Assembly (NCBI GenBank): GCA_977016875.1 | Contig: CDRNST010000114.1 | Span: 2,046,001-2,110,000, forward strand | Direction of reading: 5' to 3' | DNA from: Pavona decussata | Lineage: Eukaryota | Length of the DNA: 64,000 bases | Shown here: piece after piece, positions 6,601 through 8,993 of the stretch | Position numbering within the stretch: the first letter of the stretch is position 1 | How the letters are laid out: the number at the start of each line of letters is the position of its first letter | The notes under the pieces: model-generated | What the model saw: the letters and a program-made list of their open reading frames with translations, nothing else | Databases searched by the model: none | Told to the model about the DNA's origin: nothing | Translations under genes and position numbers: made by a program

Positions 6601-8993
6601 TGGAATTTTAAGCCAATTCTAAAGAAATGTCAAAGTAAAAAATGAGGGACAGAAATCTTTCTGAAAAATCTTTGTTGTTTAGTAGTTAAACTTGAATCAA
6701 AATTCTTGTTAATCCAGGATTAGCTTAATCGGGCTTTGAGCAACTGGGCCCTGGACTGTGTTCTTCGACTTCCAGAGCTAATCTGATTTGCAAGTATCAG
6801 CGAAAAGCCTTCAAAGCCTGGTTTGGGCAAAAAGGGATACCATAAAAGATGAGTTACACTTTTTTTTCCTCTCCAGGTATTCACCCATTGGAATATGCAG
6901 CTTGATTGCTGCACGAGTAGCAGAAATGGATGACGTTTGGGTTTCCATGCAAAAACTCGGCATGTTAATTGTTACTGATACCGTGGGACTTCTCATTCAT
7001 ACCCTGATTGTTCTGCCGATCATATTCTTTGCCTTTACAAGGAAGAATCCCTATAAATTTATGAAAGGACTGAGTGATGCAGTATTGACAGCATTTAGCA
7101 TTGCTTCAAGGTAAGTGCTAACTCTATAGTGCCATATGCCAATTTTTTTTTGCAAAACAAACTCACTAGCTGGACAAATAAACGAATAAAGAAAAACACA
7201 AAACAAAACAAAAAAAAACAAAAAAAGGAAAATGGAACGCCCTGAGCAAGCAGTAAGCCAGTAGAATGGTTACCATTGCGGATTTGTCCTAAACGACCCA
7301 GAAGTAGGAAGTGTCTTCTTTCGCGCAAGAAACAAAACAAACAGACAAATAATATTAATAAATAAAAATAAAAAGATCGATTTTAGGTAGTACAGTGCAA
7401 AATGTACGATTTCATTTCATAGTTCTCTTTCCAATTTTCCTTCATTTTCTTCAGTGTTGCAACCCTCCCAATAACAATCCGATGTGTCGAAGAGAATAAT
7501 GGGATTAGCTCGCGCATCAGCCGCTACATGCTACCGCTGGGCGCTACAGTGAATATGGACGGCTCAGCCTTGAACAGACCTGTTGTGATTATATTTATTG
7601 CCCAGTTAAACGACATTGATATGAGCCCTGGGAAAATTGCTACAGTCTGGTGAGTAAATTGTGTAAGGGACATTGAGAGGGGGTTAATAGAAGGTAACTA
7701 AAGTCCCTGGAAAAAGCTTCGTGTTGTTTACTTGTGTTAAGTTTTATCTCGATTACAAGAGAAAGACGAACACTTTTGCTGTTAACGAGTTTGGAGTTTT
7801 ATAAAAGGGTAAAGATTTTATGGGCTGAATAATAGAAAAGGGTAGGAAAAACTATCGTTTAGGCATATTAAAGGACCTTTCAAAATATCTTGAACAGCCC
7901 AACCGAAAAAAAGAGATCCAGTTTTTCTGAATGCATGCATTTCAAAGGGTAACCAGTTACTATGGAAGGTATATGAAAGGGTTACATTTTGAGTCAAAAC
8001 TGGTATATAAATTGGTAGGGATTTGGTCCTTGGGTCCGAGACTCCCTGTATAAGACTTTTTTAAGTCCCCCGGGACATGTAAATGCCTTATTCTTTCTTT
8101 AAAGAAGAACAAATACAAGATTTAAAGGTCCATTGTCGAAGCAAAAAAAAGTTCTTACATAAAAAATGATTGTGAAACAATTATAATCGGTTCGCTTAAC
8201 ACCCAGCATGAGTGTGGTATGGTGAATGGAGTACAAAATTCGTTTCATACGTGACGGCTAACCAAAGTATCTTCGACTGTGAAATGCTCATCGAGGCCGT
8301 CTTGTATTCAAGTCAAATACCGCGCTTTGTGGAGCTAAACAGAAGTAACAGAAGTCAGAAATTCGGAGGATTCCTTATACATAATGCGTTTTCATAATGC
8401 AATTATAAAATGTAAGTACCAGCTTAAAAGTGATTCGTCGAAGAAACGGAAGAAACGAAATTTTGAAGCTTTGTTTAATTTTTTTTTTTTTTATCAGATG
8501 ATTCCCTTTTCTCCATTCAGGGGTTGTTTGCAGACCTGTTCCAATAAGTAAATTGCCATTGGTTTTATTTCACCTCCCTAGTGTTATGTCTGTGCTGATA
8601 GCGTTTGGTGCAGCTGGAATTCCTGGGTCAGCCATGACAACAATCATTGTGTTACAGTCTGTTGGTCTACCGCTGCATGATTTGGGGCTCATCCTTGCCG
8701 TTGACTGGCTCTTGTAAGTGTTCTTCATAGGACAGACTTTTTGTCTTGTTTCCATTTTAATCCTTGGTTGAAAACAGTATTTTTTAACACATACATATAT
8801 GACTGTCCACATTCCTCTTAGGGACCGTTTCATCACAGTTGTCAACGTCATTGGGGATGCCATGGGGACGGGAATTATTGACCATCTGTCCCGTCACGAG
8901 CTAAGAGAAACTCCGGAGGAAAACAACAATCCTCAGATGAAGTACCTTGATGATGACCAACCTGACGCTCAATTAATGGCGTCTGGTGTTTGA
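3657..8993 (+). CDS. SLC1-family (EAAT/ASCT-like) Na+-dependent amino acid transporter, 3' six exons; 5' exons not seen (probably upstream of the window)
   Basis: Phase-compatible GT-AG exons 3657-3699, 3966-4297, 6877-7110, 7455-7649, 8582-8713, 8822-8993. Motifs: [28 protein letters not shown]1 AFSIASSVATLP, TM7 [14 protein letters not shown]2 GAAGIP, TM8 [21 protein letters not shown]. Confidence 0.95.
4490..4564. mobile_element. 75-bp Harbinger-type MITE in an SLC1 intron
   Basis: TIR AGCTGGTGACAC...GTGTCACCAGCT, flanked by TTA on both sides. Confidence 0.7.
4570..5040 (+). mobile_element. Second tRNA-derived repeat (degenerate tRNA-like core 4850-4924) with inverted and direct partial copies
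   Basis: GGCCTCGTAGCTCAGTCGGTAGAGCA (A box). An inverted tRNA 3' half lies at ~4615-4660, and GCTAACGCTCAGTAGGAATTTCATGGGTTCA is repeated at ~4685 and ~4972. Confidence 0.6.
5134..5810. mobile_element. Non-autonomous TTAA-inserting DNA transposon (Kolobok-like)
   Basis: TIRs of about 65 bp, GGTTACCCGATACCTTCAGAGGTGTCTCGCG... / ...GACACCTCTGAAGGTACCGGGTAACC, with TTAA at 5130-5133 and 5811-5814. Confidence 0.8.
6509..6753. mobile_element. MITE of the CTGGGCCC..TTGTT family (same family as 53877-54120)
   Basis: Ends CTGGGCCCGCTTGTT / CAACTGGGCCC. Internal ATTAACGCTAATCCACGATTA is shared with the copy at 53877. Confidence 0.65.

Follow-up and report, generated by a model that had tools for sequence, protein, structure and literature searches.

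A rewired glutamate-transporter binding site in a conserved SLC1 gene group of stony corals

The window analysed here is a stretch of 64,000 nucleotides from the stony coral Pavona decussata (GenBank assembly GCA_977016875.1, contig CDRNST010000114.1, hereafter C114, positions 2,046,001 to 2,110,000 of the forward strand), and it carries a gene of the SLC1 transporter family on its plus strand. As reconstructed from splice sites and reading phases, the gene consists of seven plus-strand exons with a 1578-nt coding sequence for 525 amino acids that is free of internal stops. The first exon, 3.1-3.6 kb upstream of the window (C114:2042426-2042895; L034:1426-1895), begins with Met and matches positions 1-110 of the Pfam SDF profile (PF00375, sodium:dicarboxylate symporter). 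Exon 2 (3657-3699, 43 nt) falls between transmembrane helices (TM) 3 and 4, possesses an AG acceptor and a GT donor, matches the phases of exon 1 (AG/A, encoding Arg) and exon 3, and has a homologous exon in all 11 paralogues. Exon 3 (3966-4297, 332 nt; profile positions 134-179) encodes the glycosylated TM4 loop and TM4b-c, ends in a GT donor and shares a split Trp codon (TG/G) with exon 4 (6877-7110, 234 nt; profile positions 179-254, E 1.5e-14), which extends from TM5-TM6 to the start of hairpin 1 (HP1). The last three exons, exons 5-7, span positions 7455-8993. Exon 5 (7455-7649, 195 nt; profile positions 255-319, E 2e-19) encodes HP1 and TM7 with its NMDG motif and aligns by phmmer to residues 330-397 of human EAAT3 (hEAAT3). 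It shares a split Cys codon (TG/T) with exon 6 (8582-8713, 132 nt; profile positions 320-365), which holds the end of TM7b, hairpin 2 (HP2) and the start of TM8 (..DWL). Exon 7 (8822-8993, 172 nt including the TGA stop) follows an AG acceptor and encodes the C-terminus and TM8, the latter aligned to EAAT1 and EAAT3; a split Leu codon (TT/G) divides DWLL/DRFIT between exons 6 and 7.

Splice sites of exons 4, 5 and 6 are canonical, all introns are GT...AG with a pyrimidine tract, and the phases are consistent, including the split codons AG/A, TG/G, AG/T, TG/T and TT/G. Each of exons 3-6 exceeds the 27.9-bit cut-off of the SDF profile, and together they cover profile positions 134-365. Database searches were run per exon or with a full-length orthologue, P0190 from Oculina patagonica, as a proxy, and the exons were joined in silico for protein length, identity, tree and ratios of nonsynonymous to synonymous substitution (dN/dS). 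Intron 1 (~6.8 kb) contains a repeated element at window positions 16-576 and L034:4321-4687 that is open in all three frames and has recurrent ...SQTIADDRR... / ...LRSAI... units, and that resembles a dispersed or tandem repeat.

Residues were placed by phmmer alignment of single exons with the solved hEAAT3, EAAT1 and ASCT chains, and hEAAT3 numbering is used here. A sequence-only reading of the window had described altered TM7, TM8 and HP2 motifs, and this description was correct on every point: the motifs lie in three exons with canonical AG/GT borders, and the alignments return its Arg to Ile change in TM8 and Glu to Arg change in TM7 as R447I and E374R. In TM7, the codons AAC AGA CCT (7573-7581) encode Asn-Arg-Pro (model residues 400-402) in place of Tyr373-Glu374-Ala375, and the ten-residue stretch opposite hEAAT3 NMDGTALYEA carries T370S, Y373N, E374R and A375P. 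The proton carrier Glu374 is thereby replaced by Arg (AGA, 7576-7578). TM8 reads DRFIT opposite DRFRT, with Ile (ATC, 8832-8834; model residue 473) at R447 and with D444, R445, T448, N451 and D455 retained. The HP2 tip, GIPGSAMTT (8616-8642), has one residue less than the EAAT/ASCT tip GIPQAGLVT, as the sequence-only reading also stated, and a one-residue gap is needed in the phmmer alignments. Further changes not included in that reading are T370 to Ser, A375 to Pro and S333 to Val; the last is an HP1 residue (GTT, 7456-7458) that is Ala in all orthologues, so that the Val is private to this genome. Markers of the SLC1 Na+ sites are present, namely the NMDG unwound region in TM7 and N451 and D455 (the N and D of ..NVIGD) in TM8. 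An AlphaFold2 model of the 79%-identical orthologue P0190 has a mean predicted local distance difference test score of 84.6 and a predicted template-modelling score of 0.80, and its top Foldseek matches are EAAT3, ASCT2 and EAAT1 (template-modelling scores of 0.86-0.93 normalised by target). The predicted SLC1 fold of eight TM helices and two re-entrant hairpins is confirmed through this orthologue model, which confirms the fold only.

The altered positions have well-defined roles in known carriers. In hEAAT3, S333 and N451 bind the alpha-carboxylate of the substrate, D444 binds the amino group, and T370 together with R447, which makes a cation-pi contact with Y373, binds the distal carboxylate; once the carrier is empty, R447 turns to deprotonated E374 and forms a salt bridge with it (PMC7929514). 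Protonated E374 bonds the G415 carbonyl and zips HP2, the K+ site is formed by D444, T448 and HP2 carbonyls, and mutants of Y373 and R447, as well as E374Q, lose K+ coupling (PMC10160106). Archaeal carriers with Gln at 374 require neither H+ nor K+, the Gln bonding the G415 carbonyl and so keeping HP2 closed (PMC10160106). Replacement of R447 by Cys in EAAT3 gives neutral amino acid exchange, and ASCT2, like the archaeal carriers, has Gln at 374 (PMC7929514). D444 and T448, in turn, separate amino acid from dicarboxylate SLC1 carriers (PMC3737229).

Set against these roles, the coral protein possesses neither the Arg447 stacked on Tyr373 of EAATs, having Ile447 and Asn373, nor the Gln374 and Thr/Cys447 of ASCTs, having Arg and Ile. 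DRFIT retains the D444 and T448 that distinguish carriers of alpha-amino acids from dicarboxylate carriers such as DctA and CuqDCT. Given that the NMD motif, the Na1 and Na3 acidic ligands, D444, T448 and N451 are all kept, a Na+-coupled carrier of alpha-amino acids is expected. H+/K+ coupling of the EAAT type should be absent, since a permanently cationic Arg stands where the proton carrier was and both Tyr373 and Arg447 are gone.

The 602-Mb genome contains 11 SLC1 loci, and its SLC1 sequences cluster with stony-coral ones. Of the ten loci besides this gene, eight have a canonical YE in TM7, and in the five of these eight that yielded a TM8 exon it reads D-R-x-R; the TM7 exon of locus g11 was not recovered. 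The tandem neighbour g3 (C114:~2031900-2039800) lies upstream of the window on the same strand as the gene described here, with all seven exons found and no stops. It reads NMDGLAIARV in TM7 and DRSVT in TM8, and its HP2 is equally short. On Tara contigs L057 and L060, genes of these two types stand head to head, indicating that the pair is inverted in one lineage. Five further loci, g7-g11 (C83:346768-360500, C83:1191000-1215985, C69:380236-398000, C67:3832000-3854102 and C67:3992000-4013693), are nearly identical canonical SLC1 loci on three contigs, with end branches of 0.003-0.02 on the tree, an indication of recent segmental duplication. No TM8 exon was recovered for g8-g11 and no HP2 exon for g9, and some of these copies may be incomplete.

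Beyond this genome, a HMMER search of 1.84 billion representatives with exon 5 returned Arg at position 374 only in exon-sized open reading frames (ORFs) of coral-associated assemblies; the matches were mostly such fragments and served only as handles to contigs. Among these, Tara Pacific metagenome contigs hold a complete seven-exon orthologue with NRP and FIT that adjoins a g3-type gene. Annotated and transcript-derived members were obtained by word-index searches with full-length proteins. These include intact orthologues with NRP and FIT from O. patagonica (ACROYT_G028153, P0190; 78.7% identical) and Desmophyllum pertusum (P0300), and P0298, a 505-aa protein encoded by an unbroken ORF of a 1973-nt Logan contig; its 90% cluster comprises 218 sequences. 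The intron-free state of P0298 implies a spliced mRNA and hence expression in a relative. The orthologues from Oculina, Desmophyllum, the Tara contigs and the transcript all carry the identical NRP, and the orthologues that share the rewired residues are 72-79% identical to this gene. Comparison with the Tara orthologue gives a dN/dS of 0.095 at a saturated dS of about 2, and g3 gives 0.11-0.18. The exons for TM7, HP2 and TM8 are the most strongly constrained, with dN/dS <=0.07 wherever dS could be estimated. To judge from these ratios, the gene is under long-term purifying selection.

A decaying or assembly-specific copy, in which the substitutions would be inactivating lesions, is therefore extremely improbable. 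Such decay does occur in this group, as a degenerate copy on Tara contig L065 (873-1993) has a frameshifted exon 4 and NMDGSDLNRQ in TM7 and is probably a pseudogene. The gene described here, however, has an intact ORF with canonical splicing, a spliced transcript in a relative, and residues shared with orthologues of 72-79% identity at a dN/dS of about 0.1, albeit at saturated dS. An explanation as a pseudogene or assembly artefact is effectively refuted by the intact ORF, the conserved orthologues and the purifying selection. The sequence-only reading had allowed that the substitutions might be private to the assembly or accompanied by inactivating lesions upstream; instead, the same residues recur in the tandem neighbour and in orthologues of other corals, and seven canonical exons encode 525 residues without an internal stop. 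Its view that this is not a standard glutamate transporter is upheld by the replacement of Tyr-Glu in TM7 and Arg in TM8, conserved across several coral genera under purifying selection. The intact gene is thus shown, at the level of sequence, to be a member of a stony-coral SLC1 subfamily with a rewired EAAT 'YE/DDR' coupling motif.

On a maximum-likelihood tree, this subfamily forms a clade of 15 rows (support 100/99) that is sister (99/96) to a canonical coral paralogue with Y-E-A / F-R-T from Oculina, Acropora and this genome, and an Actinia sequence lies outside both groups. The clade can be divided by its residues at 373-375 and in TM8 into five types. NR and FIT, whose co-occurrence in one clade had been raised by the sequence-only reading, are found together in the A-type (N-R-P / F-I-T), which comprises this gene, Oculina, Desmophyllum and the transcript. 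The B-type (Y-R-A / G-R-T) keeps both arginines; the C-type has Y-G-A / C-R-T; the D-type has D-R / F-I-T, plus one D-N / F-V-T member; and the E-type, which includes g3, has A/S-R-V / x-(V/I/M)-T. Further clade states, D-N with E-R-F-V-T and Y-G with C-R-T, are seen in P0226 (a Logan transcript), P0198 and L066; a single change would turn the Gly codon GGC of a Y-G / C-R-T member into CGC, the codon for Arg in the B-type gene of Oculina. All other types together form the sister group of the A-type (100/99), and among them B and C diverge first and D and E are nested (97/96).

Nearly every member of the clade has the HP2 deletion, which the sister g2-type lacks, and on this tree E374R and the one-residue deletion both map to the base of the clade. 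The residues Tyr373 and Arg447 go together: types B and C keep both, types A, D and E have lost both, and Tyr373 occurs only where Arg447 is kept. Forcing all rows without Arg447 into one clade costs 26.8 log-likelihood units and is rejected by the approximately unbiased (AU) test (p = 0.0095), in which the convergent columns were left in the alignment, a bias against rejecting a single clade. The most economical reading of the tree is that the Tyr373/Arg447 pair was lost twice, apparently independently, after the TM7 Arg had been gained.

The clade has been found only in stony corals among the sequences retrieved. A search restricted to the TM7-TM8 region of P0190 returned no additional Arg374 proteins, and Arg374 is confined to the coral set among 424 fetched proteins. 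No clade member was present among the Acropora, Montipora, Nematostella, Actinia, Exaiptasia, Xenia or Hydra proteins returned by the same searches. A B-type gene with both arginines was sought in this genome and none was found, only g3 and g4 belonging to the clade. The canonical paralogues of this genome group with Acropora and Montipora, which is the sole basis for its placement in the 'complex' coral lineage. On a tree with vertebrate ASCTs as outgroup, the clade falls well inside the cnidarian EAAT-like genes and is remote from the outgroup. P0382, a human ASCT2 database protein among the matches of the TM7-TM8 search, was excluded from all analyses. The position of the clade, as sister to a canonical coral paralogue within the cnidarian EAAT-like radiation, speaks against common descent with vertebrate SLC1A4/5. 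Given the nesting, loss of the TM8 Arg was independent of that in ASCTs, and any neutral specificity would be convergent.

The coral protein resembles EAAT1-5 (SLC1A1/2/3/6/7) in fold, in 44-46% sequence identity and in NMD, HP1/HP2, D444, R445, T448, N451 and D455, but differs in Y373N, E374R, R447I and an HP2 one residue shorter. With ASCT1/2 (SLC1A4/5) it shares the absence of Arg447 and Glu374 and the expected loss of H+/K+ coupling, whereas ASCTs have Gln374, Thr/Cys447 and a full-length HP2 against its Arg374 and Ile447; ASCT representatives P0016 and P0078 read FQ in TM7 and TC / TT in TM8. Archaeal GltPh/GltTk likewise have no proton carrier and no K+ antiport, and an uncharged or non-acidic residue at 374 that can bond HP2 lets the empty carrier return (PMC10160106). 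By analogy, they are likely to be a kinetic counterpart of the coral carrier, although they keep Tyr317 and Arg397 (equivalent to Y373 and R447) and share about 30% identity or less. The lineage-specific mosquito dicarboxylate transporters CuqDCT/AeaDCT provide a precedent for an EAAT-like gene of an invertebrate re-specified by a few binding-site changes after duplication (PMC3737229); these carry D444N and T448A and keep R447, whereas the coral gene keeps D444 and T448 and is changed at R447, E374 and Y373. Haliotis rubra P0002 (XP_046546859.1), with two tandem partial transporter copies, has Ala at Glu374 (NMDGGAVFAA) and keeps D-R-F-R-T. To judge from its sequence, it is one more natural case, besides the vertebrate ASCTs, of a lost proton carrier.

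Residues 374 and 447 are contact partners and Arg is longer than Glu, so the TM7 guanidinium should fill the cavity served by Arg447 in EAATs. The favoured reading, held tentatively at a little under even chances, is that the protein is a Na+-only carrier of an acidic or strongly polar amino acid in which the cation of the cavity has been handed over from TM8 to TM7. In the empty carrier, the TM7 Arg would pair with D444 and help HP2 to close; in the loaded carrier, it would provide, alongside the Ser370 hydroxyl and the Asn373 amide, the positive pole for the side chain of the substrate. The HP2 deletion falls in the 413-417 segment touched by residue 374. With Ser370 and Asn373 the pocket of the A-type stays polar, an indication of acidic or polar substrates. 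The order of events read from the tree, with the TM7 Arg first and the TM8 Arg and Tyr373 lost later, fits a cationic hand-over better than a plain ASCT-like switch.

It is also quite possible, although less than probable, that the gene encodes a convergent neutral amino acid carrier, in which Ile447 makes the pocket neutral as Thr/Cys does in ASCT1/2. The TM7 Arg would then make no substrate contact and would be a permanent stand-in for protonated Glu or Gln, acting as HP2 zipper and counter-charge to D444, and neutral amino acids could be moved either by obligate exchange or by Na+-driven net uptake. Every Arg-less member has Ile, Val or Met at 447, the E-type has Leu or Val at 370, EAAT3 R447C exchanges neutral amino acids, and Gln374 occurs in ASCT2 and archaeal carriers (PMC7929514), all of which accord with such a carrier. 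The HP2 deletion lies right at the G415 carbonyl contact made by the archaeal Gln (PMC10160106), and the more apolar E-type is better suited to this explanation. A specificity switch alone, however, needs no Glu to Arg change, as Gln is enough in ASCTs, and a buried unpaired Arg would be costly, yet NRP is invariant across A-type orthologues. Moreover, the A-type retains the 370 hydroxyl and gains Asn373, so its pocket remains polar, and Arg447 was lost only on an Arg374 background.

Several points weigh against the hand-over of the cation to TM7. Ile447, and Leu/Val370 in the E-type, make the pocket more apolar, as in ASCTs and EAAC1 R447C. P0226, with DN at 373/374 and E-R-F-V-T in TM8, has neither positive charge, so that the TM7 Arg is not indispensable. 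The group forced together in the AU test was chosen after the first tree had been seen, and the branch that separates the B and C types has only 85/83 support. If B and C were one clade, one loss and a regain of Arg447 would be equally parsimonious; this ties on Arg447 alone, and a regain of Tyr373 would be needed as well. A neutral exchanger and a relocated charge, the two possibilities named in the sequence-only reading, cannot be separated by sequence.

A role other than transport on an SLC1 fold, as an anion channel, sensor or regulatory subunit with relaxed transport constraints, is improbable. EAATs have a built-in anion conductance, and EAAT4 and EAAT5 work mainly as channels. The gene also adjoins a ligand-gated K+ channel-like gene in two corals. 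In Oculina, a gene with Lig_chan/Ion_trans matches (L068:16479-23628, -) converges on the A-type SLC1 gene and is homologous to the window gene just downstream of the transporter (window positions ~12731-15727, -, and ~35719-40075, +), so that adjacency of the transporter and an amino-acid-gated-channel-like gene is conserved between the two corals. All Na+ and alpha-amino-acid ligands are nevertheless retained, the exons for TM7, HP2 and TM8 are the most constrained of the gene, and no channel-specific feature was found.

Members of the clade carry no annotation beyond 'excitatory amino acid transporter' or 'hypothetical protein', and this conserved transporter group of stony corals appears to be so far undescribed. 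In the open-access literature searched, neither an E374R-type mutant of an SLC1 carrier nor a residue-level account of cnidarian SLC1 genes was found, nor are these residues treated in a 2026 survey of metazoan EAATs. To our knowledge, Tyr373, Glu374 and Arg447, the basis of H+/K+ coupling in EAATs, have been studied almost only by mammalian mutagenesis. The coral clade offers selected natural variants with a stepwise exchange of these three residues, both-arginine forms and two apparently independent losses of the Tyr373/Arg447 pair. It bears on whether a permanent positive charge at 374 can take the place of H+/K+ coupling, on whether TM7 can supply the substrate-binding arginine, and on how HP2 length co-adapts. 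A natural 'charge-swap' series in stony corals, from Y-E/R through Y-R/R to N-R/I or A-R/V, that amounts to a new coupling solution for SLC1 is conceivable but doubtful; if it is true, the evolutionary intermediates are still alive and testable. For the corals themselves, the sequences suggest two to five unannotated amino acid carriers per genome, probably of new specificity, which matters for nitrogen and amino acid traffic in the coral holobiont.

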